From Macrostomum lignano (Eukaryota), in assembly GCA_002269645.1 (NCBI GenBank), contig NIVC01000260.1:659171-723170 (forward strand): 64,000 nt of DNA. The letters run 5' to 3'. The notes below the pieces were generated by a model. It saw only the letters and a list, made by a program, of their open reading frames with translations, had not been told where the DNA came from and did no database searches. The position numbers were made by a program, and so were the translations under genes. This document shows positions 21,815-43,705 of the stretch, piece by piece; within the stretch, counting starts at the first letter, position 1; each line of letters opens with the position of its first letter.

Positions 21815-21882
21815 CTACTTGACCCAGTCGGCGCTCGTCTCGATCTCCGCCTCCACCTGAGCTTCGGTGAACAGCAGCAGGC
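21815..21882 (-). pseudogene. Orphan 3' fragment of the CTL-PAN gene family (LLLFTEAQVEAEIETSADWVK*)
   Basis: 1 mismatch to the conserved family tail over about 62 nt; no upstream homology (abuts TATATATA). Confidence 0.85.
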
Positions 21883-22913: not shown

Positions 22914-23633
22914 TCAGTGCACGCTGAACTTGACCCAGTCGGCGCTCGTCTCGATCTCCGCCTCCACCTGAGCGTCGGTGAACAGCAGCAGGCGGCAGGC
23001 TCTCAGCTTGCTGTTGTACAGCATGTGTCTGCAGCTGGCCGCACGCATGCCGGCTGCAGTGCACCTCATGGCGCTGCTCACATTCGGCACATCGCTGAAG
23101 CAGTACACAGAGTGGTGCAGCTCTCGCTTGAAGTCAGCGGCCTTCCAAACTCCGGTAGCAGGGTGCCGGGCTGTCTCACTCACAAACTCGCACACGAAGC
23201 CGAGAACAGAGTGGCACCTTTTGTCACCAAGAGTGACATCCCTCCTGATGCGCAGGCAGTTTTCTCCTGTTGAGCCAGTAGGATTGTATGATAAGTACAT
23301 GGAGTTGTCATCCGGGAGCAGGCCGTTGCCGTTGACCCTCTGCCAGCCGGCCCTGCTGCCGCCTCTCTCATCGGCCAGGTCGCTCACTCCGATCCACAGG
23401 TCGCAGCCGCAGTTGGCACTGGAAATATTTCGACCGAGTAGCAGCTTGATGGAGTCGTGCGAGTTGACGAGCTCGCCTCCGATAGATTTGCACTGCTCAT
23501 TTGCTGAGCACCAGGTGCGGCTCTGAACTGTGCTCACGAATAGGCACTTGCCGGCCTCGAGGTGGAACGGAGCGGGGCACGGCTGAGCTGAAGCCCAGAG
23601 CAGTTGAGCACTTAAAATCAGAAGCACTTGCAT
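22914..23633 (-). CDS. Secreted C-type lectin domain + C-terminal PAN/apple-like domain protein, copy A (intronless, 239 aa)
   Basis: Signal peptide; CP..F...GKC, W..A...C...GGEL, LWIGVSD, C..C...FVCE CTLD pattern; C-terminal C-x11-C..C.H.LYN....CRL PAN-like pattern. Confidence 0.88.
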   Translation of the reverse strand: MQVLLILSAQLLWASAQPCPAPFHLEAGKCLFVSTVQSRTWCSANEQCKSIGGELVNSHDSIKLLLGRNISSANCGCDLWIGVSDLADERGGSRAGWQRVNGNGLLPDDNSMYLSYNPTGSTGENCLRIRRDVTLGDKRCHSVLGFVCEFVSETARHPATGVWKAADFKRELHHSVYCFSDVPNVSSAMRCTAAGMRAASCRHMLYNSKLRACRLLLFTDAQVEAEIETSADWVKFSVH

Positions 23634-24364
23634 TATATTGTCGCTAAATGTTGAGCACAGACAAAGAGCACGCAGTTACCAAAAAAACTCTTCCATCGTA
23701 GACAGTCGGGAATTTACGAGTATCTGATTTGCGACCAGTCCGTCCGCGTTGCTATGGCATAAAAGTTTTGTTACATCAGCCTTTTAAAAGCCACTTACAG
23801 GTGAGTAAGCAGAAGCCAGCGAACAAATAAATTCCTACGCAAATATCGATGCTTGCAAAACAAGTAAAGACGCTCAAAGCGCTTTTCTTCCTTTTTATTT
23901 ACCTTTCTGTTGTTGCTAAAGCTCTCAGTGCATTTGTCATGAAGAGAATGCGATTCTGCAGTACTCCGTGAGCTGTCTAGCAGTCCTAAAGAGTTGATCA
24001 TTTTCTGTTGATTTTTATATGTATGAAAAAACTGAAACTTAAATACCCAGTCGACGAGTTTCCAATAGTCTGGCTGGTCTGGATGTCTAGTGTCTACTGT
24101 TTTTTTTTTGTTTAAGCTCGCCATTGACAGCCCTTGGTTTCTACAGTTTAGCAATGGTTCACCAGCACTTTTTTGCGTAATCCCTGAGCAGATGACCCCT
24201 AATCTCCGAGCACTTCTGCAGTCGTCTCTAAGCAGTTTTCACCGATCCAACTGAGACCAAAACAACTCCAAAGTTATATGGCATATTTTTCAAAAAATTA
24301 AAACCATTTCAATTGTTTCCAACTTTGTAATTTAAGTTTGCTTTACCGTCTTCTTAGGTTGTGC

Positions 24365-24527
24365 GAGTTATACTAGTGGTTAGAGCGTCGGACTCAACAA
24401 CTTGAAGGTCGAGGGTTCGATTCCCGACTCCACTGGAACAATTTGCGTCCTTGAGCAAGACACTTAACTCTGCATTGCTTCATTTCACCCATTAGCTGGG
24501 GTTATTGAGGGTGTGTGTGGCGACTCG
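24365..24527 (+). mobile_element. tRNA-derived SINE, family A (second copy)
   Basis: A and B boxes plus a GTCCTTGAGCAAGACACTT central box; homologous to 12025-12312. Confidence 0.75.
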
Positions 24528-24604
24528 ACATATTCTATTCCAGTTTAAACAACTTTAAATTTCTCCATCCTGCGTCGTAACTCTGGCACGACTCCCTCCA
24601 GTAC

Positions 24605-24606
24605 GC

Positions 24607-24686
<80 letters not shown>

Positions 24687-24735
24687 CACAGACAGACAGA
24701 TAGACAGACAGACAGACATACTGAAGGACAGACAC

Positions 24736-24786
<51 letters not shown>

Positions 24787-24790
24787 GTTA
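24605..24790. repeat. (GACA)n microsatellite
   Basis: Tetranucleotide repeat. Confidence 0.97.
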
Positions 24791-25525
24791 TACGCAGATA
24801 CATGTAAGATGGACTGACTGCAAAAACCGACATGGAAATATTCGCAGCCTTTATTGCTAAAATTTGAGCGAATGCTATTAATCCTGGAGCGGAAAACCCT
24901 GGTCAGGCTGCATGAAAATAGGCAGCTGAAACCGGAGCTTAAATGTCAATATATGAACCTGAAATAAGTTAATAACATTCGCATTGTACGAGCGTATTTC
25001 TCCCATCAGTCCATCTGCATAGACAAACAAATCGCCTTCGGAATTCTGAGCAGGCAAGCAGGACCGCCCCAGTTCAGCTCTAAATGCAAATGGAAAACTG
25101 AGCATGCTGCTCACTCACTCTACGTGCCTTGGGAGGTTGGACGCCATTGGCCGAAAGCAGGCACGGCAATCTTCAGTTTTTTATTTTCTTTCAGACACTT
25201 TTTACTAGTAGTTATTATCAATTCTCAGAAAAACAAGCCAAGCAGTTCGCAGATCAAGTGAAGCAAAAGCTTCTGAAACTTGCTTGCTTGTGGGAGCACC
25301 AGAATTTACTAGTAACTCCTCAAGCTGCGACAGACCTCGAATTGAATTGTTGAACTTCCGGTCTTAAACTATTGAACGATGTTCAGGCATCAGCTTTGTG
25401 AGTAGTAGCGTTTACAGGCAATCTGCAAATGTACAGTAACTCTGACTGTCAAATTTATATTGAACAGCTTGCGAATAAGTTTAGCCACACAGAAATATTA
25501 CTGAACAAGCCCATCAACACTGCAG

Positions 25526-26059
25526 GTGATGATGGGGCACACAAAGGCTGTTCAGTTTCTAATTGTCTGTGCGCTTGTTTTTCTGCTCGGCTCGCATCTG
25601 TACAGTCTGGCATCGGGATCTGGAATAAAATATAGCCCTAGCAACATCCGGGTCTCGAAATCTAAAGCGTTTGGGGCCTCTTCGATAATTGTCAAAGCGA
25701 CTGGCTCCCAAACCTCTGGTGTCAGAGCGACTGGCTCCCAAGCCTCTGGTGTCAGAGCGACTGGCTCCCAAGCCTCTGGTGTCAGAGCGACTGGCTCCCA
25801 AGCCTCTGGTGTCAGAGCGACTGGCTCCCAAGCCTCTGGTGTCAGAGCGACTGGCTCCCAAGCCTCTGGTGTCAAAGCTTCTGCAAACCACACCTTTGCC
25901 AACAAAGCCTCACTAAAGGCCGCTGAAAGCTCCCAAATCACCCAATTTCCAAAAGCCGCCCAGACCGCAGCAGCGGACAGTCCTTTACGATCAGGCGTCC
26001 CAACAAAGCGAGCAACGCAAAAAACGACCTGCTTCAAAGTGAAATTTTTGCAAAAGGCG
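25526..26059 (+). CDS. Putative FkbM-like methyltransferase gene, exon 1: N-terminal TM/signal anchor plus Ser/Thr-rich stem with a 30-bp coding repeat (VRATGSQASG x about 6)
   Basis: Hydrophobic FLIVCALVFLL segment; donor GCG|GTGAGT at 26060 in phase 0. The link to the downstream exon is inferred. Confidence 0.55.
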
Positions 26060-26434
26060 GTGAGTTTCAGGTGGTGCGTTACTCGTGGCGAGGACCAATA
26101 GACTTTAAAATATGATCGTATTGGTGAAAATATTTAATAGGAACACGTCGTGCTCAAGCGACTCAAAGCTCTTTCATTTCAAAGTGAAGATTTTCAAAAA
26201 GCTTCATGGCTTGCGAGCAGCTTTAAAAGAGCTCCACTTGAAAGATCCATGCTTTTTTAAATTGCAAACTACGAGGTAAACCAGCTGGCTATGTTGTGGC
26301 TAGACACCACAAATTAGGGGTCGAGAGACTTTTTTACGTCAGCGAGCCTGATTGCAATCTTCACAAGGACAACCCAAGTAACATATACAGGACGCAACAC
26401 TCGAAATCGATGGTAAATGTTTTGAAGGCAACTT

Positions 26435-26650
26435 TTCGCCGAAAAATACACTAGAGAGATGGGAGGTTTTAATTTTCTTCTGCACAAAAATTGTTATTGC
26501 TTTCGATAGGAGGCAGATCCAGTGTTTATCTTTTGATATGTTGTGCCTTTCTTATTGCTCTATCGATATTTATAGAGCTTTTTGTTCAGAAATAGTTTTA
26601 AAGGCAGGTTTCACCGGAAAAATACACTACGGAGATAGGAATTTCACGAT
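26435..26650 (+). repeat. Dispersed repeat shared with 62445-62615
   Basis: GAAAAATACACTA..GAGAT.GG..GCACAAAAATTGTTATTGCTTT.GATAGGAGGCA.ATCCAGTG is shared. Confidence 0.75.
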
Positions 26651-27217
26651 TTTCAACACTAAAACAGTGATTGGGTCTCTCAACAGTGTCAGAGAAAGTT
26701 CTAATCACACTATTTTGTCCCTCACATGCTGCTCTAACGACGCATTAATCGATTTTTCATGTTAAATTGGTCTGTTCACTTGAAAAAACGTTTAAAATAA
26801 TGACAAGACCTGAGATGAATGTCCTTGTATCTTCATAGCAGCATAACCCTGCTCAAGTGAGCTGAAATCTTGCCAATAAAACCGCTCGAAGCCAGCTCAC
26901 TCGTCGCGAATGGGCGTTGACACCTTCCGGCTGTATCCGGATGCCCGTAGCACCCTGCGACTGAGTTAAGTCAGTTTTTTTAAGCTGGCTTTTCTCTGAA
27001 AGGTAAAAACATTTTGAAGACGATTAGGTAATTCTTTTGTAGTTCAGCTGTTAGTTACGCATCTCTGTTTTAAACGCATTCAAAACAACTCTCGACACAA
27101 AGTCAGATTTTGGTGCACAAAGCTTTCAAGCGTAGAAATTCGATCAGATGTGCATCAAGAGTGCACGCGTACCCTTCAGACACCCCCCTCACCGCAATTC
27201 AATTTTGAATTCTGCAG

Positions 27218-27714
27218 CACTCCATCCGCCTCTTCGCCTCGGTGGCAGCGAACGGCTTTCAGGACAGAGTGCGGGTGTACTGGAACGCCCTTGATCTGAA
27301 GAGCAACCTCAAGATGAACATGCTCCTGCCCAGCGATTGTAACATTGGAGGTGGCGGCCTCGCGAGCAAAGGCGACTCCAGGATAGCTGATTCGATCGAC
27401 GTGCGAACGGCTGCTTCTCCGGCGTTAGCGAGCTCGTTGTGAAGGTCGACATGGAATCTCAGGAGTGGCTGGTCAAAGCTACCGGTGCCAAAGTCTTCAA
27501 GCGCTTCAAAGTGTCCGTGCTCATGATGGAGTGGGTGGGCACGCAGCGACACCACTCGGATAAAGCTCCCGGCATCATCGACTTCTACAAGTCCCACGGC
27601 CTGCGGCCGCATACCCTGAATGGCAACCGGTTGGTGCGACTGGGCGAGGACTTTAAGTCGTGGCCGTGGGACATCTTCTGGGCAACGAAGGAGTTCGCAG
27701 CCAAGAAAATCTGA
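27218..27714 (+). pseudogene. FkbM (Methyltransf_21)-like catalytic exon, frameshifted near 27395-27440
   Basis: SVAANGFQDRVRVYWNAL..CNIGG..VVKVDMESQEW..VLMMEW resembles FkbM motifs (N..+.V..NAL; KxDxEGxE; MEW). The two halves are in different frames, and SAM motif I (DxGANxG) was not found. Confidence 0.6.
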
Positions 27715-28077
27715 AGGTCCTTCTTTGAATGCTCGAACTCTTTGCATTACTATTTTTTACATTGGCTGTTATAGAATATCAACTAATACTCATAAAATCT
27801 ACTTTAGTAAGTGTACTGACTCAGACTACACTTACTAAAGTGAGTGAGTGAGTAATTACTGACTAACAATCTGCGCAATGATCAATTCTAAATTGCTCAA
27901 TCTTCAATTCTCAAATAAAATCGGTTATGGCGTAATTAATTTCTCAGTGAGCCAGTATCGTCTCCAATAAAGTTTAGACTTATTAACCTTACATGTAGGA
28001 TCACCCAAATCTAAAACATAAAAGAATCATAAACCATAAAAACGTCATGTCAAACATAAAGAACCGTCATGTCAGTA

Positions 28078-28182
28078 GTACATGAAACTCAGTAGTATAT
28101 GAAACTCAGTAGTATATGAAACTCAGTAGTATATGAAACTCAGTAGTATATGAAACTCAGTAGTATATGAAACTCAGTAGTA
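28078..28182. repeat. 17-bp tandem repeat (GTAGTATATGAAACTCA)n
   Basis: Visible period-17 units. Confidence 0.9.
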
Positions 28183-28782
28183 GTTAGGGCATTATTATAT
28201 TTAAGTTTTATACAAAGACTATTTTACACAAATTAACAAAATTAGCAAGTTTACAAATATTCAGACAGCATTCTTACGTCGCAGAACAAAATGACAGGAG
28301 TGTCCTCCGTCACACAGGCAGCTCAAAACTTCGTCTGCAGTAGAAGCGATGGAACCGAGTCCCCATTCACAAACACTGCACCAATACTGCTCAAGTTTGC
28401 ATGCTCTCAAGTTACGCGGATTTGTGTCCATGTTACCAGTCGTTGAATGCTTTGTTGCTTACGATTGCCAACAAGTAAAGACATGGTGACACCACTAGGA
28501 AACAAATTTTTGTGCGTGTGACCAGACGATCCTCGGGTATAGTACTGTAAATGTACAAAGGCATTTGCATTAAACTTGCATTGCATTGTGAATTGTGAAT
28601 TTTTAGTCCATGAAGACATTTGCAGGGCACCTGGCGTGAAATCAGGTGATATTTTTCGACATGACATTCTAGATGATTATTCCATCTTAGCTACTGTTAA
28701 TAGTCACTGAATTTATAATTTAGTCCTCAGGCTCTAAACAAAGGAGAGCCAATAGGATATGGTGAAAAGAATTGCTAGCAGT

Positions 28783-29489
28783 ATGAATCAGAGCTTTGTG
28801 CCCTCTGGTATTGCTGCTTCTGGGCTGCTTGAGCAGTTGCGAGTTGCTGTTGGTGCGGACCCAGTCCTGCCCCAGCCCATTCAGCATCGAGTTTGGCCAA
28901 TGCCGTGTTCTTGAGCACAGAGAATCGGCGATGCGCATCGATCGGTGGCGAGCTGCTCAACTCGCACAGCTAGCTGGCTCTGCTACTGCCGACACTCGCC
29001 TGCGACTGCTGGGTCTGGCTCGGAGTGTCCGACCTGGCCGATGAGCGAAACACGAGCAGGTCTGACTGGCAGCTGGCCAGTTTCAACGGCATCCTGCCGC
29101 TGGACAATTCGCTGTGGGCATCGGCTGAGCCTGATAACCAAGACGGCAACCAGGACTGCGTTGCTGTGTTGTCTTCTTCAAGTTCTGAATCTGGCTGGGT
29201 TAGTCTGAGAGTTTGTCGATAAAGCAACACTGAGGTCTCCGTCAGGCCAACTGTGGCAGCGGACTCCGTTCAAGCGCAGCGTAACCCCAGCTCCGAGTTC
29301 TGCCACGCTGACCTGCTGCAGGTGAAGAACGCAATGCACTGCGTGACAGCTGGCATGCGTGCGGCCAGCTGCAGACACGTGCTGTACAACAGCAAGCTGA
29401 GAGCCTGCCGCCTGCTGCTGTTCACCGACGCTCAGGTGGAGGCGGATATCGAGACGAGCGCCGACTGGGTCAAGTTCGGCTTGCACTGA
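28783..29489 (+). pseudogene. CTL-PAN family copy B, disrupted (internal deletion, frameshifts, in-frame TAG at 28971)
   Basis: Homologous blocks CPSPF, CASIGGELLNSHS*, WLGVSDLADER, EPDNQDGNQDC, and EFVD in another frame; intact conserved tail. Confidence 0.85.
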
Positions 29490-30869
29490 GCAGTCATGAG
29501 TCACTTCTGAGTACTGATGGCTGATCTCAGCAATGAAGGACACAGGAAATTTTAAAAAGCAAATTGATAAACAATTGATATCTGAGTTAGTAGTGGAGCA
29601 GTGCCTGATCTTCTTAATTTATTGTTTGTAGGCTAAGGTCAATCATTTACGAGTGCTTAAGAGCTGAGACAGTATCCGTTGGCGAAGCCTGTTTTTAAAG
29701 GTCTGAATCTTCGTTGGAGTAAAACGCATTTTTCATTGCTTTTTGTAAGGCCGTTTCAGTCATCTGGACGCTCTGATATGCCAGCGGCCCAGGCTCGATT
29801 CACGAATTGGAAGAATTGCAAAGCTTAGCAAGCATCTGTTCATCAGCGATTCAATATTTATCCGACTCTTGCTTCAATATCCACCAAGCAATGCAGTTGT
29901 CTTTCCAGTGTAAATACCCGCGAATAGCCGACGAACATGTCTGGGTCTGGTCTACGCTCGTAGTGCTTGTCAGGACTGGCCTTTCCGGAACAAAATGGTC
30001 AAAGCTTTGATGTTCCACTCTAAATGTTAGCAGCTCACAGAGAAAAGGAAGAACAATCTGAATCTTTTAAAATACCAAAAAAGAAGAGAAAATCATAGCA
30101 GTTTTTGCTGCTCTACTTTGGCTGCTCAAACAACGCAGCGATGCCTCAGTCAGGAATGTCCTTTCTATGATTTGACCATGAAAGATGTGATTCGAGAGAA
30201 AAGGGCCAAATGTATTTTGAATGAAGCTGCTACATCTCGGACTGTTTTTTATACCTTCGATTCACTGCCGAGCAGCATTTTGCCAAGCAATACTTACCAA
30301 GAGGAGTTCAACTCCCACTTTGCACTGCTACAGCCCGAATACCTATGCCTGTGTGAGACAGCTTAATGGTTAGAGTTGGGCTGACATTTTTCCTATTCAA
30401 AAAGTGGCTAATACATTTTGCTCCCCTCATGAACAGTCAGATATAAGCAATACGAGCTATACTTATTGCTCCTCGATTGCAGCTGCTCCTTATTTGAACA
30501 AGGCTAAGCATTGCAGATGAGAAACGCTAGCAGCTAGCTTCTTGAGACGAGAAATGCTTGTGTAAAACTAACAATCAACAGGTGCGATAGTTTAGTGTGG
30601 TTATTGGAGGCTGAAGAGAGAGTTTGAAATACTTTGCAAAAAGAAAAATAGCAAACTAGACTTTCTCCAATTGCAGCCGCTGGTGATATCATGCAAGAAT
30701 AAAGGAGGATGAAGCATAATTAAACAAACAATGTGTTGAATGCGATCGCACATAAGGTTTGAGATATATCGCACATAAGTACTGATTATTTTACTCATTG
30801 ATTCAAATGATACGATTTCCCGCAGTTCACTTGACACTAATAGATTTAGACAGCAATTCGTAACACTAA

Positions 30870-32400
30870 TAAGCACTGATTGACACCCCCATTCCGCTGG
30901 CCCCTGGCGACCAAGGACTTCAATCAAAGCGATGTCGCTCAGGGGAACCCGACGGCCTCGCCTGCAGCGCGGTTCTCCTCACCGGCGATGAGGAAGATCT
31001 CAGCTCGTCCCGTGTCCCCGAGGTACCGGGCGAGCAACGGGATGCTTTCGGGCCTGCAAACGTCGGGGAGAACCAGGGTTTCGGGCCGAGGTGAGTGAGC
31101 AGATAAAGTTTCATTGCCTGAGCGGCAGAAAGGGCACCAGCCTCAGGTACCTGGCCTTGAAGGAAGCGGTGGCGAGAGAAGCAGCCATGCCCTGAGAGGG
31201 AAATGCAAACTGCTCTGAGGTCTCTGCGGTCAAGCCTAAGGAGGGCTCTGCGCAGGAGGGGAGAGGGACATCCCGGCAGCACGGGATTGCCTGCAATTCC
31301 GGGTGTCGTGCCACCTGCGGAGAGGCTCGGAATCAGCCCAGCGCTTAACGCGAGAGTTGATCACCGAGGCGGGGATGGGGTCCCTGGGCCCCGGCCCCAG
31401 CAACGCGCCGGCGGAGCCAGCCTTGGCCAGCAAGTCAGCGCGCTCGTTGCCGAGGAAACCAGCGTGACCCGGGATCCATCTGAGCCCCATCTGATTGCCA
31501 AGCGCCAGCCCATTGAACTGGGCATTGTAGTCCAGGACAGATTTTGGGTTGGTGGTGCTGCGGCAGAGGGCCCGAAGGGCTGCTTGGCTGTCAGAGTGAA
31601 AAATCTTTGATGTTCCGCTGAGCGCTGAGCTGCCTTCGGCGCAGCTCTGCCGAACAGGAGCTGGCTCAGGAGAAGGGCGGCTGGGATCGACTCCATGAGA
31701 ATGTTGAGCCCGCCACACTCCTCGAGAGTCTTAAGGCAGAGGTCAGAGTGCGGGATAAGGGACCGTTTCTTAAAGACCCGCACCTTTTTTAACGCCTTCC
31801 CGACATACAGAAGGCGCCGGGTGCTCTTCACCCGCTTCTTCTTTGATATAAATATCCAGAGGAGGGGCACAGAGGAAGGCATTCATGCACTCAAAAGGAG
31901 CAGAGGGTGGAGCGCCCATAGTCATTTGGCAGGCTCTGCCCTGGATTTTGTAGAGAGCGTCGAGGTTACTCTTGACCCTCAGGCGGCTAGCCCAACTTGA
32001 GAATGAGATCACGAAAGGTCGCTGCAAAGCAACTCATGACCATGTTCCAGAGACCGGGGTATGAACCCCGCCCTGAGGGCCCCTTTTCTGGACAGGCGAA
32101 GTTTGACAGTGCGGTTCCGGGCCATGAACATCATCCACAAGGTGAGGGTGAGTGGCTTTGGAATCCAGTGCTCTGCCAAAGGCCTCAAAGATGACATTCA
32201 GATAAGAAACTTCTCTCGGTCGCGGATAAGAACCGAGCCATCAGGTCTCTTCACCACAGAGAGTTTAGAAAACGCGGTCCGTTCGTGAGAGCCTTTACCA
32301 CGCAGGCTACGGGAAGGAGAGGAGAGGGGAGAGGAGAGATCGGAGAGTGATAGAGACAAGGATGGAGACAGTGTTTCGAATTCGAAGAGTTGTTGATTTG
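30870..32400 (-). mobile_element. Decayed non-LTR retrotransposon (RT thumb + RNase H; I/R1-LOA-like group)
   Basis: KIQGRACQMTMGAPPSAP..PPLDIYIKEEA, then IFHSDSQAALRAL and LRWIPGHAGFLGNERADLLAKAG (RNase H); frameshifted, RT core absent. Confidence 0.85.
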
Positions 32401-33259
32401 ATTTAATAGCCAGAGAAATTTACTTGAGCTGCAGGATTTTCAGCCCACTACGAGTAAAATGGACGCATTGCCAATCCAAATAGCATTGTAGACAAACAGC
32501 AGCCCACTGACGGATGTGTGTTGACCGTCAATATGCTAGAGTTTAAACCCTGCTGTGGACTCTGGCGTCGACCTGAAACTGCGATAGACTTGATCGGCTT
32601 TAAAAAAAGTCAATAAAAATAAAACTTCATGCTTGGATGCATTAGGTAGTCAAATAAATGTAAAATCAAACCTATTAACAGCGGCTTATTGACATTGCAC
32701 ACGCAACTCTCTTCCAGAGCTCAGTTCCAGAGCAATTAAGATAGTTTTCCAGCGTTGCCATCCAAAATATCGAAATAAAATGAATGCAGCAAAGTCGAGA
32801 GAAGCAGAAAGCATCGTCACCTGAATTTACCAGACATCACTGCAGTGGAATCGCTAGCGACTTACAGACAGGAAAGCAACGAACAACAGAGAAGGCAAGA
32901 ATTAATGAGATACATGATTTTCAGTTTAAAGCGTAATCATAAACAACTGTCTAAGGACTCTGCACTCGTAATTTTGAGGTTTCTTTGCATTTATCAATAT
33001 CTCACCCTCTCTCCATCCGACTGGCAAGAGGGTTATCTATAACATAATCCACATACGTCAGCCGAACGTATATGTAGGTGAATATAAAAATACCCCTTTG
33101 TCAGTCGTAAAGTTGCCGGGGGTTGCCGCTCTCGAAGATACTTTTTCACAAAAATTTTCTCGAAAAAAGGACGCTTACTTGGCTAGAAATTCTGCAGTTT
33201 GAAATTGCTGATTCAGTGCTATCAAATTCAATGCTCAACCTGTTAACAGTAGGAATACC

Positions 33260-33935
33260 AAGCCATTATTCCGCCCGTCGAACTACCAAGGGGGGGGGGG
33301 AATTTCCCCTAAACAGAGCAACGCAGGCACACGAAATTCAAGAACACGGGCTAACTTTTTGTTGCGCACCTTCTCAAACATGAATCAAGTCGCCAGCCCT
33401 CCGGACCGTCGAGATATTCGACGATTCTGCCAGAAGGTCGGATTTTTCCCATAAGTGCTAGTGTATTCAGTACACCCCTGTGCGCCAATTAGCACTGCGC
33501 CTCAGTGCAGCCTTGCCCAGTCTCCAAATTTCATCAGCACGTCGACCACATGTGTCTGCATCAGTTCTGACTTTGTTGGTCACTGGCCTGCACCCAGGTG
33601 GAGCTTCTGGACCCTCAACAGCTGTGGCACCAGGTGACTATGGACACCCTGATGCGGATTTCTCTACGAGCTAGTTTCGCCGATCAAGCCTCGACAGTGG
33701 GCAAGAATCAACCGTCAGACATTCTCAGCTAGTCTCTCGAGCATTTCGTCATCACCTTGATGCCGTCGGCACCTTCAACAAATGACACCAGATGACTATG
33801 GGCACCCTGATGCTGATTTCTCTAGTTTCGCCGATCAAGCCTCGACAGTGGGCAAGCCTCAACTGCTGGACATCCTCAGCTAGTCTCTCGAGCATTCCGT
33901 CATCACCCCGACGCCATCGGCACCTTCAACAGCTG
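33260..33935 (+). mobile_element. Repeat-family X element, left arm of a 1.27-kb tail-to-tail palindrome
   Basis: Begins CGTCGAACTACCAAGGGG; near-identical to the reverse complement of 33930-34535 and to 45525-46815. Confidence 0.8.
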
Positions 33936-34535
33936 TGGAGCTTCAGAAATGTTAAGCGCATTATGAAAAATCACGCTCAGGTGTCCTTACTCACCTGGTG
34001 TCACCTGTTGAAGGTGCCGACGGCGTCGGGGTGATGGCTGAATGCTTAACTGACTAGCTGAGGATGTCCAGCAGTTAATTTTTGCCCACTGTCAAGGCTT
34101 GATCGGCGAAACTAGCTCGTAGAGAAATCCGCATCAGGGTGTCCATAGTCACCTGGTGCCACAGCTGTTGAGGGTCCAGAAGCTCCACCTGGGTGCAGGC
34201 CAGTGACCAACGAAGTCAGAACTGATGCAGACACATGTGGTCGACGTGCTGATGAAATTTGGAGACTGGGCAAGGCTGCACTGAGGCGCAGTGCTAATTG
34301 GCGCACAGGGGTGTACTGAATACACTGGCGCTTATGGGAAAAATCCGACCTTCTGGCAGAATCGTCGAATATCTCGACGGTCCGGAGGGCTGGTGACTTG
34401 ATTCTTGTTTGAGAAGGTGCGCAACAAAAAGTTAGCCCGTGTTCTTGAATTTCGTGTGCCTGCGTTGCTCCGTTCCGGCGCAGCAAAAAAAATTGTCAGG
34501 GGGGGGGAATTTCCCCACCCCCTTGGTAGTTCTAC
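33930..34535 (-). mobile_element. Repeat-family X element, right arm (inverted copy)
   Basis: Ends CCTTGGTAGTTCTACG; colinear with the 45525-46815 copy up to GAAGCTC. Confidence 0.8.
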
Positions 34536-34630
34536 GAGCTACTGTTAATGTGCTCTAAGGTGATTCAGTCGGTTCTATATATGAAGATAATATTCCAGAG
34601 ACAATTATTTTAGACTCAAAGCATCGCCAA

Positions 34631-35347
34631 ATGCTTGTGCTGCTGCTGCTGCTGCTGAGCTGCCAGCTGCTGCAGTCGCAGGCCCTGCCGTGTCCCGCAC
34701 CGTTCACCATGCAGGCCGGTCTGTGCCTGTTCGTGAGCACAGCTCACAGCCACAGCTGGTGCTCAGCCAATCGGCAGTGCGCATCGATCGGAGGCGAGCT
34801 CGTTAACTCGCACAGCTCCATCCTGACACTGAATCGCAGCGGCATCAGCTCATCCTGCAGCTGCCAGCTGTGGATCGGACTGAGCGACCTGGCCGATGAG
34901 AGAGGCAACAAGAGAGCCGGCTGGCAGAGGGTCAACGGAAACGGCTTCGCTGACCCTCCCTTTGATCTGTTTTACGAATACGAGCCGTCAGGATATGACG
35001 AAAACTGCATTCGAATGGACCATCTGGGGCTGCTCAGAGACGCCAACTGCAGCCATAACTATGGATTCGCTTGCGAGTACAAGGACCCCTCTGCTTACCG
35101 GAAGCTTGCCAATTGGAAGAAGGTGTCGTTCAAGAGAGCCACCTACAACACCGAGTACTGCTTCACCGATGTGCCGAATGTGAGCAGCGCCATGAGGTGC
35201 ATTGCAGCCGCTATGAGTGACGCCAGCTGCAGACACGTGCTGTACAACAGCAAGCTGAGAGCCTGCCGCCTGCTGCTGTTCACCGACGCTCAGGTGGAGG
35301 CGGAGATCGAGACGAGCGCCGACTGGGTCAAGTTCCGACTGCTCTGA
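34631..35347 (+). CDS. Secreted C-type lectin + PAN/apple-like protein, copy C (238 aa, intronless)
   Basis: Signal peptide, CTLD cysteine pattern with WIGL and an EPS-type loop, conserved tail. Confidence 0.9.
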   Translation: MLVLLLLLLSCQLLQSQALPCPAPFTMQAGLCLFVSTAHSHSWCSANRQCASIGGELVNSHSSILTLNRSGISSSCSCQLWIGLSDLADERGNKRAGWQRVNGNGFADPPFDLFYEYEPSGYDENCIRMDHLGLLRDANCSHNYGFACEYKDPSAYRKLANWKKVSFKRATYNTEYCFTDVPNVSSAMRCIAAAMSDASCRHVLYNSKLRACRLLLFTDAQVEAEIETSADWVKFRLL

Positions 35348-35940
35348 TTCGAATGGAAAGAATAACACAGATTTTAAGAAAATGAAAGAAAAGTTACGCT
35401 AAAGTTTCTAACTCTGTTGTCGCAATTTTTATCCAGAAGGAATTCGCTTTGAATGGAATCTGAGCTTTATAAACTATTTCTGCAAAACTTGAGAAACAAT
35501 TGAGTAAATTTCGAACATCTAAATACACAATGGCATTCCAAAAATGCATATTTTTTAGCGTTGATAAATTCATTTTTGCTAGGAACAATAATCATAGCCT
35601 AGAAATAAAATTTGCAAGTTGCCCAGACTTGCTTTGCTAGTAGTTACGATCTGGTTTATAGATTTTTTCGAATCCATAATGCTACGGTAACGAGCTGCAG
35701 TTTAGCAGGTAAGGGGGCACAGCTCAGGGAGAAAGCGGTGAGGCAAACCAGCCAACTCCAAGTAAAACGCATCGCATCTTAAAAGCATCGCATAAAAATT
35801 GTTAAAACGATTATATATAGATATACATGTAGCAAAGATTTAGCAATGAAGAGGCAAAAACAGTCGAGTGAGGCGCAGCAACGAAAGGCGCCCCCAGATC
35901 GGTCGACGTTCTTCCATCGTTTATTGTTGCAACTAATAAA

Positions 35941-36325
35941 CAGTAGAACTAGCAAGAGAGACTGCGCCGGCACACACACACCTAAAGCAAGAATCAAGTC
36001 GCAAACCCATGCACCGTCGAGATATTCAACGATTCTGCCAGAAGGTCGGGTTTCTCCCATAGGCGCCAGTGTATTCAGTACACCCCTGTGCGCCAATCAG
36101 TACTGCGTGGCCTCAGTGCAGCCTTGCCAAGCCTCCAAATTTTATCAGCACGTTGACCATATAAGCTACGTGCCTGCATCAGCTCTGGCTTCGTTGGTCG
36201 GAGCTTCTGGACCTTCAGCAGGTGGCACCAGGTGACTATGGACACCCTGTTGCGAATTTCTCTGGTTTCGCTGATCAAGCCACTGGGCAAAAATCAACTG
36301 CTGGACATCCTCAGCCAGTCTCTCA
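35941..36325 (+). mobile_element. Diverged partial copy of repeat family X
   Basis: Starts CAGTAGAACTAGCAAG; shares CCGTCGAGATATTC..GCCAGAAGGTCGG..CACCAGGTGACTATGGACAC. Confidence 0.75.
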
Positions 36326-36344
36326 AGAATTCAGTAGTCATCCA

Positions 36345-38870
36345 AGCGTTATAATATTGTTGTTGTTAAACGGGGTGCCATGCGGCGTGGACCTACCGAT
36401 CTACCGATGATACGAGAGCGTAATAGGGGTAGGTCAGAAGCGTATGCTAGCTGGGGCCATCTCAACATTGAATTCCTATGGGTTGCCTCACAAAGATGGC
36501 AGACCCATACGGCGGGGTTCAAAGGCGAAAATGTTGGGGGTCCTGACTGCGAAGCTGTTTATGATTTGCAAGGCTTGGCACCGCCAACCCACCTTGTGGA
36601 CCTGCTTCGATCTCCTCAGAGACCAACCACAGGCGTAACCTATACCCATCGGGCCAGGTCAGTTTCGCCATGGCGGGGTACCAACTTCTGGGGCTCATGC
36701 CTTCCAGGTGGCCCTTTTTTGGATGCAGCTACTGAGGCACAAGGCCTGACCAGGTGGTCCATTTGCCAGCTCCCATCGCAGGTAGGATCCGCTCGCCAAC
36801 TGGTAGGAGAAAACAGGCTGCCTGTCGCCAAGCTTGCTGATGCAGAGGTGATTCTCTAGCACGGCCACCGGGCAAAGCGGGTGTCCGACTTTTAGCCTTG
36901 GAAGCAACACTCGCTGCAGCATCGCGACAAACTGGTTCGTCTTGCCATAACTGACGGAGAGCACAACCGAAAGTGGCGTTGAAAGGCTGAGATGGAGATC
37001 GATAAAGCGGAGACTGGACCGCCGAAACACCCCCCACCTAGCAATCAGGCTCACAAGCCAGCAGACTCTACCAGGTTACTGCTCAAATTAAGCTGGATCC
37101 TCACAGACATCTGCAGATTCCGTCTTGGCCGCTGGCCCATTCTGTTTTGTTAGGTCCTCAGCACCACAGGCTTTGACTTAGCTGGACAGTGCACTGACGT
37201 GGACACGCTGACTGTTAAACGATCTCAGGCGGCATTCAACCAGGTGAGCCAGGTAGTTGGGTAAGCACCGACCAGTCGGATCGAACCGGGTTGGTCCCGT
37301 TCTCGCTGCAGTAACTGCGCCAGGACCGGACGGCCGCTGAGATCGGCCCTACGCGACTGCGGTGCGTACGGTCTGCTGCGGCGAGGAGGCCGGAGGCGGC
37401 GGTGCCGAGGGTGATCCGAAAATTCTGCAGGGAAAATTTGCACAGAGACATAAAAACTGAAAAAAATGAGCAACTCATTAGCAGCATCGGCAAACAGCTG
37501 ATAGACACCCTGGAACGGGAAACACCGTAAAAATTTTACGTCAAAACACGGACAGAGCAACGCAACAAACTACAGCAACCACATAAGCCGCGAGTCCTTG
37601 GAGACGCCTCGTCTCAGAATCCAACACGCCCTATCATTGTCGCACCTGACCCCCGGCCAAGGATTGGCCCGATCTCAAAACAGCCGGCAAGATAACCACA
37701 GCCTCCTTGAAATCGATGCAGTAATGCTGATAAACACCATTCGCGCCAGTCTGCCAGACAATGAAGCACCAATCGCGAATTCTATCAACGTCACAGAGCA
37801 CAGCCGCAGCACCTGAAGACGACGAGTCGGTCTCCATGGTAACACAAGCCCTCCGCGAAGTCTACAGACCAATACCGATGCAATGCTGCAAAGCCAAACG
37901 CCACCAGGAGAGGTGGTGCACCACGGAGGGGCCAACAAGAATCCTGTCATGAGGCCGATTCAGTTTGTCGAAAATGTCGATTAGAGGTCGGAGGAAAACT
38001 CTCCCGTGCCGAACAACTTGCGACGCCCAGTTTAACATGCCAATCAGCTTTTGTAAACTTGACTTTGACAGCCTTTTCTTCGAAGAGCAGAGAGATAAAA
38101 CGTGCAAAAAACTTTGGACCTTGTCGACAGGAAGACATCTGACCGCCAGCCACGCTATCGAATAAAATTCCCAGAAAGGTCATCCGCGTTGTCGGTGGAA
38201 CAACACTTGCTACGATTCAGTGAATACCAGCCGCTCCAGCAGATCGATGAGATGATTGTAGAACTTCCAGCAGCACTCTCCAGATCTCCACAAAAGACGA
38301 AGTCATCCATGTAGGTCTCTATGGCGTCGAAACCATGTTTCAACATCATAAAACGCACAGTTTGACTCAGCTCATGACAGTACAAAACGGAAGCCGAAGC
38401 CCAAAAGAGCATACAGGTGCACAGAATCTGCACAGAACAGTAGCCGATCTGTGATTTGCCGTGTGCTTCTTAAAATCCATCACTTTGAATTGCCGTGTAC
38501 TTCTGAAGCTGTTCTTTACACCATCGAGCACGAACCTGACTCGGTCCTTCGGCATCTCGGTCCCAGCCAGCTCTTCCCGTCAAACCACAAAGACAAGGTC
38601 GCTTGGCAATTCCGTTGAGCTCGGGCCCCTTTAGGGAAGTTCCTCCGTGGGGGCACATGGTGACCCGGCGGAGGACTTCGAGTCCTGTGCCCCCAAGTCG
38701 ATAAAGTCGCCAAACGACAGCGACTCGGGACTGACGTGCCTTAACCGCACAGGCCTTGTCAGTCGAACAACAGACTTCCTTGTCTCCTTGTCTCCGCTTC
38801 TGCAAGCATTCGTTGTTGGTGTCTTTCTTGTCATCTTGAGTACGAGTGTACATATTATGGCGCCTCTCTA
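36345..38870 (-). mobile_element. Decayed DIRS-order (Ngaro-like) tyrosine-recombinase retrotransposon: RT (internally deleted), RNase H, YR
   Basis: FVLDGVKNSF..NHRSAT, ETYMDDF, MTFLGILFDS, LQKLIGMLNWASQVV..RVFLR..LSWW, then YR-like GKTNQF..PLCPV..KRATW; multiple frameshifts. Subclass assignment is tentative. Confidence 0.8.
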
Positions 38871-40237
38871 GTGTACATTCTCTAGACTCTAGTGAGAAAG
38901 GTATTAAAAAGTATTATGATGCTTTTTTCTCGTATGTAATACATTGTAAACTAACAATTTATGTTGTATTAAAATAGGTATAATTCTTGCCCCTTATGTT
39001 ACTTATAATAGCGCCTTAAGTCTTCTTCAAGACAGGAAATGTGAGGGCTGATTGATGCATGGGGTGGCTGGGGACTCAGATAGGACTGATAGCAATTATA
39101 TAAGCAGACTTTTAAACAATGGAATGGAATGCCAGCAGCTTTTACATGTCGTTTTGGATATAGCTGCTGTTTATGGATCTTCAATTTTAGAAAAAAATAA
39201 TCCCATGAGAAAGGACTGGCAACGGAGTAAAAAATCTGTTCCAAGAGGACCGAAGGCGGACCCACAAAAACAACACCTGCAGGAGTTCTTTTGATGGTTT
39301 TAAGAGTGCAAACTGTACATTTACAGTCAGAATTTCTGGTTTTAGAAAAATAATAAACAATATTGATTGTCTGCTGGGAAAAAGACTTGTCAGAGTCCTA
39401 TCTGGGTCTTCCGGACTCATCTTTTCACACCGGGATGAGAGGTAAAAACGCGTTGCATGCACAACTAAATCAGAATCGCCAATAATGTTTGATTTACTGC
39501 GAGCTTGAGAGAAATTAGAAAGGAAGGTTCCGCAATCCACATTTTCATGACGCTGATTTTTAATAGAACTGGTGGACAAGGCAGTTTCCTCGCACACATG
39601 TATAGGGGTGATTCTCGTAATCATCAAACGGGGAACAATGGGGGCATGGGTATGACTCAAACGCACTGGAGGACGCGGTGCGCTAGCACTGCAAGAGTGC
39701 CCGGCACAACAGCAAAAGAACTGCTGGACAAGAAAGTCAAAAAAGGGATATTGCTGCTAATTGAAGTCTCAAAGCCAACCATACCAAGTTCAGCCTCGGA
39801 TGCATCAGGTGGCCAAAAGTTTTGGTAAAGTTTACCCTTCCACAGCGGATAATGGACACAGCAAATGCAACTCTTGCCAGCTCACGACTGTCAATAAACC
39901 CCGGATGTGGCGTCTTCCTACACAAATGTGGAAATAAAACTGTTCCCCAAAATCGACATTGCAAAATGAAGAAGAAAATGGAATAAGAGAGGAGAGAGGA
40001 TTGTATCTGCATCGTCAAGGGATTTTCACAGACATTGAGACAGTCAGATCGAGACACCCAACAGTAGAAGAAAGCGACAAGTGACTGCAGGCGGAATCAA
40101 ACTCTTGCAGCAAAGAATCGAACAACAACAAAAAGGCAAGAATTAAACTGCCATTAAATCATATAGAAATAATGAGCATTCCTACGAATTCTCGTGGCCT
40201 GAAATTTACGCTTTTTAGGTTCAGAGAGCATCGCCAA

Positions 40238-40957
40238 ATGCATGCGCTGCTGCTGCTGCTGCTGCTGAGCTGCCAGCTGCTACCGACGCAGGCCCTGCCG
40301 TGTCCCGCACCGTTCACCATGCAGGCCGGTCTGCGCCTGTTCGTGAGCACAGCTCACAGCCACAGCTGGTGCTCAGCCAATCGGCAGTGCGCATCGATCG
40401 GAGGCGAGCTCGTTAACTCGCACAGCTCCATCCTGGCGCTGAGTAGCAGCGGCATCAGCTCATCCTGCAGTTGCCACCTGTGGATCGGACTCAGCCAGCT
40501 GGCAGACTACAGAGGCAAGAGTACGGCTGGATGGCAGAGGGTCAATGGCAACGGCATCTTTCCGGATGACAGCACTCTGCTCAGAGGGCTGAGTGACAAC
40601 TATGAAGAATTCTGTCTAAGAATAAAACCTGATGGAAAGATCGCTACAAGAGAATGCTGGAAAAATTATGGATTCATCTGCGAGTTCGTGAACAAAACTG
40701 GACCCCAAGCTGATCGAACCTGGACGGCCGCCCGCTTTGACCCAGCGAATTACAACAACTCCTACTATTGCTTCGAAGATGCAAAAAACATTGATAGCGT
40801 CATCGAGTGTACAGCTGCTGGCATGTGTGCGGCCAGCTGCAGACACGTGCTGTACAACAGCAAGCTGAGAGCCTGCCGCCTGCTGCTGTTCACCGACGCT
40901 CAGATGGAGGCGGAGATCGAGACGAACGCCGACTGGGTCAAGTTCCGCCTGGTCTGA
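40238..40957 (+). CDS. Secreted C-type lectin + PAN/apple-like protein, copy D (239 aa); real start likely ATG 40238 rather than 40172
   Basis: AGCATCGCCAAATG start context is shared with copy C; signal peptide; one N-terminal Cys changed to Arg (GLRLF). Confidence 0.88.
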   Translation: MHALLLLLLLSCQLLPTQALPCPAPFTMQAGLRLFVSTAHSHSWCSANRQCASIGGELVNSHSSILALSSSGISSSCSCHLWIGLSQLADYRGKSTAGWQRVNGNGIFPDDSTLLRGLSDNYEEFCLRIKPDGKIATRECWKNYGFICEFVNKTGPQADRTWTAARFDPANYNNSYYCFEDAKNIDSVIECTAAGMCAASCRHVLYNSKLRACRLLLFTDAQMEAEIETNADWVKFRLV

Positions 40958-41754: not shown

Positions 41755-43705
41755 AGATGTGTTTTAGGTCTGCAGGATCTACCTGTAGGTGTGTTTTAGG
41801 TCTGCAGGATCTACCTGTAGGTGTGTTTTAGGTCTGCAGGATCTAAATGTAGTTGTGTTTTAGGTCTGCAGGATCTACATGTAGGTGTGTTTTAGGTCTG
41901 CAGGATCTACATGTAGGTATGTTTTAGGTCTGCAGGATCTACACGTAGGTGTGTTTTAGGTCTGCATGATCTATAGGTGTGTTTTAGGTCTGCAAGATCT
42001 AAATGTAGGTGTGTTTTAGGTTCGCAGGATCTATAGGTGTGTTTTAGGTCTGCAGGATCTATAGGTGTGTTTTAGGTCTGCAGGATCTATAGGTGTGTTT
42101 TAGGTCTGCAGGATCTACATGCAGGTGTGTTTTAGGTCTCCAGGATCTATAGGTGTGTTTTAGGTCTGCAGGATCTATAGGTGTGTTTTAGGTCTGCAGG
42201 ATCTATAGGTGTGTTTTAGGTCTGCAGTATCTACATGTAGGTGTGTTTTAGGTCTGCAGGATCTACATGTAGGTGTGTTTTAGGTCTGCAGGATCTATAG
42301 GTGTGTTTAGGTCTGCAGTATCTACATGTAGGTATGTTTTAGGTCTGCAGGATCTACATGTAGGTGTGTTTTAGGTCTGCAGGATCTACACGTAGGTGTG
42401 TTTTAGGTCTGCAGGATCTATAGGTGTGTTTTAGGTCTGCAGGATCTATAGGTGTGTTTTAGGTCTGCAGGATCTATAGGTGTGTTTTAGGTCTGCAGTA
42501 TCTACATGTAGGTGTGTTTTAGGTCTGCAGGATCTACACGTAGGTGTGTTTTAGGTCTGCAGGATCTACACGTAGGTGTGTTTTAGGTCTGCAGGATCTA
42601 CATGTAGGTGTGTTTTAGGTCTCCAGGATCTAAATGTAGGTGTGTTTTAGGTCTGTAGGATCTATAGGTGTGTTTTAGGTCTGCAGGATCTATAGGTGTG
42701 TTTTAGGTCTGCAGGATCTACATGTAGGTATGTTTTAGGTCTGCGGGATCTACACGTAGGTGTGTTTTAGGTCTGCAGGATCTATAGGTGTGTTTTAGGT
42801 CTGCAAGATCTACATGTAGGTGTGCTTTAGGTCCGCAAGATCTACGTGTGTTTTAGGTCTGCAGGATCTACCTGTAGGTGTTTTTTAGGTCTGCAGGATC
42901 TACATGTAGGTGTGTTTTAGGTCTCCAGGATCTATAGGTGTGTTTTAGGTCTGCAGGATCTATAGGTGTGTTTTAGGTCTGCAGGATCTATATGTGTGTT
43001 TTAGGTCTGCAGTATCTACATGTAGGTGTGTTTTAGGTCTGCAGGATCTACACGTAGGTGTGTTTTAGGTCTGCAGGATCTACACGTAGGTGTGTTTTAG
43101 GTCTGCAGGATCTACATGTAGGTGTGTTTTAGGTCTGCAGGATCTACACGTAGGTGTGTTTTAGGTCTGCAGGATCTATAGGTGTGTTTTAGGTCTGCAG
43201 GATCTACATGCAGGTGTGTTTTAGGTCTGCGGGATCTACATGTAGGTGTGTTTAGGTCTGCAGGATCTACATGTAGGTGTGTTTTAGGTCTGCAGGATCT
43301 ATAGGTGTGTTTAGGTCTGCAGTATCTACATGTAGGTATGTTTTAGGTCTGCAGGATCTACATGTAGGTGTGTTTTAGGTCTGCAGGATCTACACGTAGG
43401 TGTGTTTTATGTCTGCAGGATCTATAGGTGTGTTTTAGGTCTGCAGGATCTACATGTAGGTGTGTTTTAGGTCTGCAGGATCTACATGTAGGTGTGTTTA
43501 GGTCTGCAGGATCTACATGTAGGTGTGTTTTAGGTCTGCAGGATCTATAGGTGTGTTTAGGTCTGCAGTATCTACATGTAGGTATGTTTTAGGTCTGCAG
43601 GATCTACATGTAGGTGTGTTTTAGGTCTGCAGGATCTACACGTAGGTGTGTTTTAGGTCTGCAGGATCTATAGGTGTGTTTTAGGTCTGCATGCAGGTGT
43701 GTTTT
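41755..43705. repeat. About 1.95-kb minisatellite of mixed 28/32-bp units (GTGTGTTTTAGGTCTGCAGGATCTA[TAG|CATGTAG])n
   Basis: Visible tandem units with two length variants. Confidence 0.97.

Follow-up and report, generated by a model that had tools for sequence, protein, structure and literature searches.

A 114-bp 3' coding segment is nearly identical among diverged tandem lectin genes of Macrostomum lignano, probably as a result of gene conversion

Results and discussion

Four tandem gene copies in a 64-kb stretch of Macrostomum lignano DNA (the whole sequence analysed, called the window below) encode small secreted lectins, and close to their 3' ends they share a 114-bp segment, the tail, in which no two copies differ at a synonymous site. 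We consider it likely that the tail is a homology island whose uniformity is maintained by recurrent short-tract non-allelic (ectopic) gene conversion between these clustered paralogs. We infer this from the sequence of this one array. The initial annotation of the window had proposed either gene conversion or a nucleotide-level function. The first of these is supported by the mosaic structure of the genes, the tract edges, the dN and dS values, the GC3 pattern and an orphan tail fragment, whereas the second found no support where it could be tested.

Organization of the lectin gene array

The genes of this family are intronless and code for a protein of ~238 aa that is composed of a signal peptide, a C-type lectin domain and a PAN/apple-like C-terminal domain. 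The following members were found in the window:

22914-23633, minus strand: gene A, intronless ORF of 239 aa with signal peptide, C-type lectin domain and PAN-like C-terminal domain
28796-29489, plus strand: pseudogene B, E-type, last ~73 codons intact
34631-35347, plus strand: gene C, 238 aa, 82% identical to the M. lignano protein A0A1I8H0J8 (P0001)
40238-40957, plus strand: gene D, about 239 aa with the Met at 40238 as start, ORF open from 40172
63612-64000, plus strand: paralog E, 5' part only, start approximate, gene continuing past the end of the window; its aligned residues are 96% identical to the C-terminal part of the M. lignano protein A0A1I8JSG6 (P0003)

The match to the C-type lectin family PF00059 scored 27.6-33.6 bits, which is above the gathering cut-off of 22.6, and the match to the PAN/Apple family PF00024 scored 13.7-16.4 bits, which is under the gathering cut-off of 21.4. 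The structure model of gene C, when built from a 26-sequence alignment, reached a pLDDT of 88 (a 5-sequence alignment gave 34 and was unusable) and displayed a CTLD fold matching the CRDs of DC-SIGN and CD23 with TM up to 0.82 and E about 1e-7 to 1e-8. In the C-terminal domain the model places a helix at 187-196, strands at 177-181, 200-206, 211-216 and 232-237, and four conserved Cys. According to this model the tail would correspond to the C-terminal half of the PAN-like domain, i.e., to three beta-strands and a short helix. It is the most conserved protein block of the wider animal family, and its motif C...CR.xL(Y/F)TDA...W.KF, the best conserved in the family, occurs in ~240-aa proteins of many sources. 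The diverged middle of the genes coincides with the region of the CTLD that contains the carbohydrate-binding loops (EPN/EPS/NPT position).

The first two thirds of pseudogene B contain frameshifts, a 24-bp deletion and three in-frame stops, whereas the protein encoded by its last ~73 codons is ~95% identical to the E-type protein P0003. Its middle is only about 67% like the E-type, and its 3' third is E-type. The tail is indeed present in this dead copy, as had been pointed out earlier; as an argument for special preservation, however, this is unremarkable, since the whole of the last ~73 codons is intact.

The tail lacks synonymous differences in otherwise diverged copies

The tail comprises 38 in-frame codons and is followed by 3 variable codons and TGA. 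The 15-mer GCCAGCTGCAGACAC has exactly four exact matches in the 64-kb window (23025-23039 on the minus strand and, on the plus strand, from 29364, 35222 and 40832), the chance expectation being 0.12, and both these and the blastn positions confirmed the four locations proposed by the initial annotation. Searches with blastn and tblastn recovered only five tail copies in the 64-kb window, four full and one an orphan fragment of 66 bp:

22926-23039, minus strand: tail of copy A, 1 difference from C (position 16 G>A, Val>Met)
29364-29477, plus strand: tail of copy B (pseudogene), 1 difference from C (position 84 G>T, Glu>Asp)
35222-35335, plus strand: tail of copy C (reference)
40832-40945, plus strand: tail of copy D, differing from C at position 73 (G>A, Val>Met) and position 95 (G>A, Ser>Asn)
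21817-21882, minus strand: orphan fragment with tail positions 47-112, 66 bp, 65/66 identical (blastn, tblastn)

The alignment of the tails agrees with the earlier count of 1, 1 and 2 differences from C, all non-synonymous. Every difference is private to a single copy, and the G84T change of copy B falls on a third codon position, yet is non-synonymous. The observation that all four are non-synonymous nevertheless carries no weight as an argument, because non-synonymous sites make up 78% of the tail sites and the probability of 4/4 is therefore ~0.37 under neutrality, which is compatible with chance.

In the tail dS was 0 for all pairs of copies, whereas it was 0.51-0.99 over the remainder of the gene and reached 1.2-2.4 in the middle, where dN amounted to 0.6-0.96. 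This comparison of tail and middle had been suggested as a check by the initial annotation, and it upholds the description of divergent paralogs that carry no synonymous tail differences. Variable columns numbered 4/114 in the tail in comparison to a mean of 60.7 per 114-column gene window, and 0/5000 permutations reached the tail value. The tail was scored by this permutation of window counts, a GENECONV-like run test being unusable there (too few polymorphic sites). Where two copies have the same amino acid, they share its codon in 39-82% of cases if the tail is left aside and in 100% within the tail (34-36/34-36 in the pairs among A, C and D), in line with the earlier statement that selection on the protein cannot freeze third positions.

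A related tail is present in a contig from an independent metagenome (L001), which is a more distant relative. The L001 tail, from a contig that need not be orthologous to the array, differs from the window copies at 12-14/114 positions, including 5 synonymous changes alongside 7 non-synonymous ones, whereas the window copies differ mutually at 0-3. In comparison to L001, dN and dS are 0.083 and 0.229 in the tail and 0.495 and 1.03 in the body. Both fall together, which implies that the tail is 'younger' and not more constrained. The same-codon rate in the tail against L001 is 0.87, and even if this value is taken as codon bias alone, 0.87^35 is < 0.01 per pair. Codon bias combined with protein selection cannot account for the identity of the tail.

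Two relatives were found by a protein word-index search, and the wide family by an exhaustive profile search that covered proteins only. In the contig collection no exact match was on record for the proteins A, C, D, P0001, P0003 and P0012, and two metagenome scans, one with the tail DNA pattern and the other with back-translated peptide patterns, revealed no relatives.

GC3 is 0.92 in the tail in comparison to 0.50-0.65 in the middle. Along the gene GC3 correlates with paralog identity (rho 0.70, P 1.5e-4; 0.63 without the tail), and no such correlation was seen for GC at positions 1 and 2. The correlation could alternatively be caused by stronger codon selection at conserved residues.

The copies are mosaics with pair-specific tracts and edges

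In addition to the tail, two conversion-like tracts were detected, and both runs were significant (0/5000 permutations):

C 34618-34880, D partner within 40227-40558, plus strand: second tract, C-D, 95.4% identity over 263 bp
C 35155-35210 (plus strand), A 23051-23106 (minus strand): third tract, A-C, 54/56 identical (96.4%)

The C-D tract spans -12 to +250 of the CDS, after which the identity is 54% up to the tail. Immediately upstream of the 56-bp A-C tract the identity of these two copies is 48%, and between this tract and the tail lies an 11-bp patch (35211-35221) with 5 differences. The left edge of the tail varies by pair: the near-identity of A, B and D continues for a further 12 bp upstream and is not shared by C. 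A sharp right edge falls on the same base in 5/6 pairs. Beyond the stop codon the similarity of C and D extends for about 20 bp, and A and B share another type of 3' end. Thus, the pairing of the copies changes along the gene, from C-D at the 5' end to A-C ahead of the tail and to A-B and C-D beyond the stop codon. The 114-bp limits represent the intersection of pairwise tracts that differ in length, and there is no single common boundary. Pairwise identity along the gene revealed no recent exchange in the variable middles of the paralogs, and their intergenic and UTR flanks were not alignable past about 20 bp.

The orphan fragment has the same orientation as gene A and is located ~1 kb downstream of it, outside any gene. 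It starts at a CTG repeat and ends with ...GTCAAG, followed by TAG, and blastn and tblastn detected no further remnant of the gene family in its surroundings. We rejected the idea that it is an alternative 3' exon or arose by target-site duplication, because the matching position of gene A lacks a GT splice donor and the tail of A runs normally to the stop codon.

Gene conversion as the most probable explanation

The pair-specific mosaic, the differing left edges, the joint drop of dN and dS, the raised GC3 and the orphan copy, which like the identity itself are directly seen in the sequence, support conversion. The process would be non-crossover repair, with protein constraint sustaining the island. 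Since the tail encodes what is predicted to be the most constrained part of the protein, the strands and helix of the PAN-like domain, purifying selection may have kept it similar enough between paralogs for heteroduplex formation; conversion would then have removed differences whether or not they were synonymous, and third positions would have been pushed to G/C by GC-biased repair. Rightward spread of the tracts would be blocked by the 3' UTRs, which beyond the next 12 bp are unrelated, and leftward the tract would decay into the far-diverged lectin loop region, whose divergence is probably maintained by selection and which would confine conversion on that side. The last homogenisation may have been very recent, as suggested by 4 private changes in 456 bp (≤ about 1% of the synonymous depth of the family).

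Against conversion it can be said that an island of 114-130 bp is short for efficient homology-dependent repair, that the right edge common to 5/6 pairs is also expected from a discrete functional element, and that nucleotide-level selection would likewise lower dN and dS together.

Alternative explanations

We consider it doubtful that the tail is a functional element at the nucleotide level whose bases are held by purifying selection, for instance a putative small-RNA target or trigger, an element for mRNA localisation or stability, or a 'recombination anchor' under selection. Such an element would fit with the sharp right edge, with all codon positions being equally frozen within the tail and with its sequence being carried by both pseudogene B and the orphan fragment. 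Gene A and the orphan are also opposite in strand to B-D, and judging from this layout read-through could yield antisense RNA; yet the 64-kb window contains no further antisense or partial copy. When folded on both strands, the tail had no excess stability in comparison to shuffled sequence (z from -0.19 to +0.67), two control segments folded beside it had z about 0, and a search of the tails with Rfam covariance models at E ≤ 1 gave no match. Moreover, the synonymous and non-synonymous changes in L001 indicate that the bases do change in the wider family, and no single element explains the pair-dependent left edge and the other pair-specific tracts. The earlier proposal of an RNA element found no support in these comparisons, with z values about 0 on both strands, the empty Rfam result and the 5 synonymous changes in the L001 tail.

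It is likewise unlikely that the tail is a selected family-wide handle, either a putative small-RNA target shared by the paralogs for co-regulation or mutual exclusion, or a recombination anchor. As an anchor, the tail together with the conserved 5' block could permit germline or somatic shuffling of the lectin loops, and in the handle reading the orphan and the inverted copy A would be putative sources of antisense RNA or of donor sequence. If true, this would suggest that a regenerating model animal controls its repertoire of secreted lectins in a coordinated manner or diversifies it.

Recent descent is a very unlikely cause. It assumes young copies that share the tail and the other blocks from their common origin. 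Focal hypermutation, or else strong diversifying selection acting on the lectin loops, would have made the rest diverge very fast, a scenario put forward for conotoxin-like families. The carbohydrate-binding loops of the CTLD are a plausible site of diversification and dN in the middle is high, but dS is saturated there too, so amino-acid selection alone would not suffice. In addition, the intergenic and UTR flanks are unalignable, and the blocks pair the copies differently, which one duplication history cannot yield.

An artefact, with consensus polishing from multi-mapped short reads having made the tails alike, is in our view highly improbable. Reads lying wholly within a near-identical 114-bp repeat are not uniquely placeable, the genome is highly repetitive and the window has many minisatellites. 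However, every copy retains its own private difference, and polishing makes no similarity where reads do not cross-map. The M. lignano proteins P0001 and P0003, which come from independent annotation, have the same tail peptide with 0-1 change (that of P0003 matches the window peptide save V25A), and L001 carries a related tail in an independent metagenome.

Finally, purifying selection on the protein with extreme codon bias and no sequence exchange is scarcely credible: no other protein block of the family is as well conserved as the tail and the tail codons are almost exclusively G/C-ending, but the same-codon rates (0.39-0.82 elsewhere, 0.87 against L001, 1.00 in the A/C/D tail pairs) contradict it, the non-preferred AGA (twice) and GCT are identical across all copies, and the sole changes seen are amino-acid changes, opposite to what strong protein constraint would give.

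Antisense ORFs of 121-130 aa that overlap the tail in 4/4 copies were also considered as a cause and rejected, because they belong to no Pfam family and the divergence outside the tail is dictated by the sense frame.

Comparison with known systems and implications

The near-identity of the tails is real, yet gene conversion, its most likely cause, is an ordinary process. Conversion of a part of the coding region is known in human red/green opsins, RH and yeast WGD duplicates, the pattern being low divergence in part of the coding region, high divergence elsewhere and non-coding flanks without detectable homology (PMC3924837). The flatworm genes resemble these systems in being linked paralogs with one near-identical block that includes synonymous sites, high divergence elsewhere, flanks without homology, a block that looks 'much younger', and GC bias. 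They differ from them in that the island is very short (114-130 bp), lies at the extreme 3' end, is common to at least four or five copies, one of them inverted, and is known here from the sequence of one array alone.

Takuno et al. 2008 (ref. 62 in PMC3924837) reportedly described the preservation of a pseudogene segment by gene conversion. Similarly, the dead copy B retains an intact, up-to-date segment while its rest decays; unlike in that case, B is well kept across the whole 3' third and not in the tail alone.

A hypervariable core next to a conserved flank is found in conotoxins with their prepro regions, immune lectins, MHC and the C-type lectin clusters of NK receptors. By analogy, the flatworm lectins may be compared with conotoxin and immune-lectin families as secreted, tandemly encoded binding proteins with variable ligand-binding loops, a constant scaffold and unusually high synonymous conservation in the constant part. 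Unlike in those families, synonymous divergence of the flatworm core is saturated and not merely dN-driven.

Short conserved 3' recombination anchors occur in antigen families, namely at the 3' ends of trypanosome VSG genes and at the C-terminus/3' end of Giardia VSPs. The nearly invariant block of ~100 bp at the 3' end of otherwise diverged coding sequences appears analogous. However, VSG and VSP systems have expression-site switching or RNAi-based exclusion, neither of which is to our knowledge known for these flatworm lectins, and in contrast to genes with such anchors the variable middles are without recent exchange.

Descriptions of gene conversion and GC-biased repair in flatworms are so far scarce, and full-text literature on Macrostomum and gene conversion yielded nothing relevant. 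The array is a small and clean case in which concerted evolution probably affects only the best-conserved block of a flatworm tandem lectin family. In practice, dating or trees of these duplicates based on the 3' end would be badly misleading, and within the tail short reads and polishing tools have no unique placement. A single tail probe or dsRNA would hit the whole family, which makes it good for knock-down and unfit for copy-specific work.

Organization of the lectin genes and their products

We searched the window with the 15-mer that opens the tail, the near-identical 3' coding segment, and found exactly four occurrences (0.12 expected), one at each site placed by the initial annotation. 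All four of its copies were in place, but two further family members had been missed, a 66-bp orphan tail copy and paralog E.

22914-23633 (-): gene A, uninterrupted ORF, ~238 aa; tail 22926-23039
~28796-29489 (+): pseudogene B, E type; tail 29364-29477
34631-35347 (+): gene C, uninterrupted ORF, ~238 aa; tail 35222-35335
40238-40957 (+): gene D, uninterrupted ORF, ~238 aa; tail 40832-40945
63612-64000 (+): paralog E, 5' part, start ~63612, cut by the window end
21817-21882 (-): orphan tail copy, 66 bp (tail positions 47-112), 65/66 identical

The A, C and D proteins each start with a signal peptide, followed by a C-type lectin domain (Pfam PF00059, 27.6-33.6 bits, cut-off 22.6) and, at the C-terminus, a cysteine-rich domain whose match to PAN_1 falls below threshold. 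In the structure model derived from a 26-sequence alignment (pLDDT 88), the predicted N-terminal domain superposes on the carbohydrate-recognition domains of DC-SIGN and CD23. The tail (residues 198-235 of C) is modelled as strands 200-206, 211-216 and 232-237 with a short helix, that is, as the C-terminal half of the PAN-like domain and not as a separate domain.

The first two thirds of pseudogene B contain three in-frame stops, and the gene also carries three reading-frame changes and a 24-bp deletion; the final ~73 codons are undamaged and encode protein ~95% identical to P0003 (A0A1I8JSG6). Paralog E matches the C-terminal part of P0003 at 96% of aligned residues. The UniProt model of A0A1I8JSG6 is a sodium/solute symporter fused to an E-type lectin, in which 29 lectin residues are skipped.

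The closest database relatives of the window lectins were Macrostomum lignano proteins, among them P0001 (A0A1I8H0J8; 82% identity to C); these matches, with that of E, assign the window to M. lignano or a species very near it. An exhaustive profile search returned 726 proteins at E<=0.001, many of ~240 aa and with the same architecture. In an alignment of 26 of these proteins the conserved columns (C200, C212, D219, W232, K234 and F235) were concentrated in the tail, within the motif C..FYFN....CR.xLYTDA.......W.KF. Two more distant M. lignano paralogs annotated as globin-domain fusions, P0012 and P0045, keep this motif in their tails (…CRLLLFTDSEVEEAVETSADWQK), with about two thirds of the residues identical.

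Synonymous identity of the tail exceeds that expected from protein selection

Alignment of the four regions revealed a 114-bp block that was identical but for four changes, each in a single copy, in agreement with the difference counts of the initial annotation. Relative to C, A has G16A (Val>Met), B has G84T (Glu>Asp, at a third codon position), and D has G73A (Val>Met) and G95A (Ser>Asn). The weight originally given to all differences being non-synonymous was misplaced, because 89 of the 114 tail sites are non-synonymous and four random changes would all be of this kind with P ~0.37.

Nei-Gojobori estimates for pairs of lectin copies.
Before tail, A-C: dS 0.74, dN 0.417
Before tail, A-D: dS 0.99, dN 0.414
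Before tail, C-D: dS 0.51, dN 0.349
Middle (lectin loops), all pairs: dS 1.2-2.4, dN 0.6-0.96
Tail, all pairs: dS 0, dN 0.011-0.034

Where two copies have the same residue, they use the same codon 39-82% of the time outside the tail and in 34-36 of 34-36 cases inside it. Variable columns numbered 4/114 in the tail, whereas 114-column windows average 60.7 (0/5000 permutations). The tail observation is real and highly non-random, and the identity is more than selection on the protein, which, as had been claimed, cannot freeze third positions. Codon bias alone is likewise insufficient: with the most favourable per-codon value, 0.87 (tail versus L001), the probability is still <0.01 for one pair and ~1e-7 for three lineages.

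L001 is an ENA metagenome contig encoding P0002, a protein 51% identical to C. Its tail shows 5 synonymous and 7 non-synonymous differences (dS 0.23, dN 0.083), and its body has dS 1.03 and dN 0.495. Synonymous positions of the tail do vary across the wider family. Since dN/dS against L001 is similar in tail and body (0.36 vs 0.48), the tail resembles a younger sequence and not one under another type of constraint.

The lectin genes are mosaics

C and D shared 95.4% identity along 263 bp that begin shortly ahead of the ATG and end at CDS position 250, and 54% from there to the tail; A and C were 48% identical in the middle and then 96.4% over 56 bp (35155-35210). Both high-identity runs were significant (0/5000 permutations of polymorphic sites). 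At the 5' end C groups with D; before the tail, A groups with C and B with the E/L001 type; and beyond the stop codon the groupings are A-B and C-D. The genes are mosaics whose segments conflict over relationships. A further 12 bases upstream of the tail (GGCATGYGTGCG) are almost identical in A, B and D and not in C, and the C-D similarity runs ~20 bp beyond the stop codon; the 114-bp limits are the intersection of tracts.

Copy C carries an 11-bp patch (35211-35221 (+)) that differs from A, B and D at 5 positions and is flanked by the tail and the upstream 56-bp tract, which both closely match A. Micro-conversion from a different donor, or a complex mutation, could account for the patch. There is also a second, small island of identical nucleotides (~20-40 bp, ...TGCGCATCGATCGGAGGCGAGCT...), at 34760-34800 (+) and in the matching parts of A, B, D and E; it is common even to the distant L001, and contains the A-ending codons GCA and GGA.

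The orphan copy stands alone in non-coding sequence ~1 kb downstream of gene A; nothing else of the gene remains nearby. Its first bases, directly after TATATATATAG, are the CTG-repeat part of the tail, and its last are ...GTCAAG, with TAG next; it is possibly filler DNA left by a repair event. No more partial or antisense tail copies were found within the 64-kb window.

Gene conversion and other explanations

Recurrent short-tract non-allelic gene conversion is the best explanation, and a probable one. Conversion would have been restricted to the block where protein constraint kept sufficient homology, and a heteroduplex could not extend rightward because the 3' UTRs are unrelated. Converted duplicates have been described as showing low divergence in parts of the coding region, divergence peaks at maintained differences, non-coding flanks that have lost recognisable homology, and a much younger appearance of the converted regions (PMC3924837). 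The window features all fit this behaviour, and the lectins would represent a new instance of a well-known process.

Conversion may also carry a GC-biased signature. GC3 was highest in the tail (0.92), lower in the 5' block (0.71-0.82) and lowest in the middle (0.50-0.65), and followed paralog identity along the gene (Spearman 0.70, P 1.5e-4; 0.63 without the tail), while the GC content of codon positions 1+2 did not track it. GC-biased heteroduplex repair could produce this pattern, as could stronger codon selection at conserved residues.

It is unlikely that the identical block has a selected role of its own, as a putative small-RNA handle or recombination anchor. The RNA element that the initial annotation had offered as one option found no support, the tail folding no better than dinucleotide shuffles on either strand (z -0.19 to +0.67) and the same as two neighbouring control segments; an Rfam search of the tails gave no match at E<=1. 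The four tails each overlap an antisense ORF of 121-130 aa; these ORFs lack a family match and were dismissed as the usual by-product of G/C-ending sense codons. As for an assembly artefact, a few genuine differences may have been lost to polishing, but the island itself could not have arisen that way. Each copy keeps a private difference, two independently annotated M. lignano proteins share the tail peptide with 0-1 change, and L001, from an unrelated assembly, has a related tail.

Repeats around the lectin genes

Repeats are very abundant in the window. Gene C is immediately preceded by an inverted repeat of ~510 bp (arms 93% identical), which has relatives in a 151-bp satellite and in a copy on the downstream side of C; it probably represents a transposon or satellite family. 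Degenerate retroelement fragments between the lectin copies matched RNase H (26.9 bits) and, weakly, a reverse-transcriptase thumb. The minisatellites include a 23-bp unit repeated ~190 times with strong strand skew and a 32-bp unit repeated ~63 times, among others.

33312-33822 / 33965-34474: inverted repeat arms
35982-36343, 45556-46144: stretches related to the inverted repeat
45836-46771: 151-bp satellite
31236-31718 (-), ~37860-38430 (-): retroelement fragments
50899-55260, 41758-43691, 2092-3064, 6498-7332, 10522-11342: large minisatellite arrays
25526-26101 (+): putative ORF, 191 aa

Six copies of a 10-residue unit, ATGSQASGVR, occur in the putative ORF and correspond to a 30-bp tandem repeat at 25690-25878.
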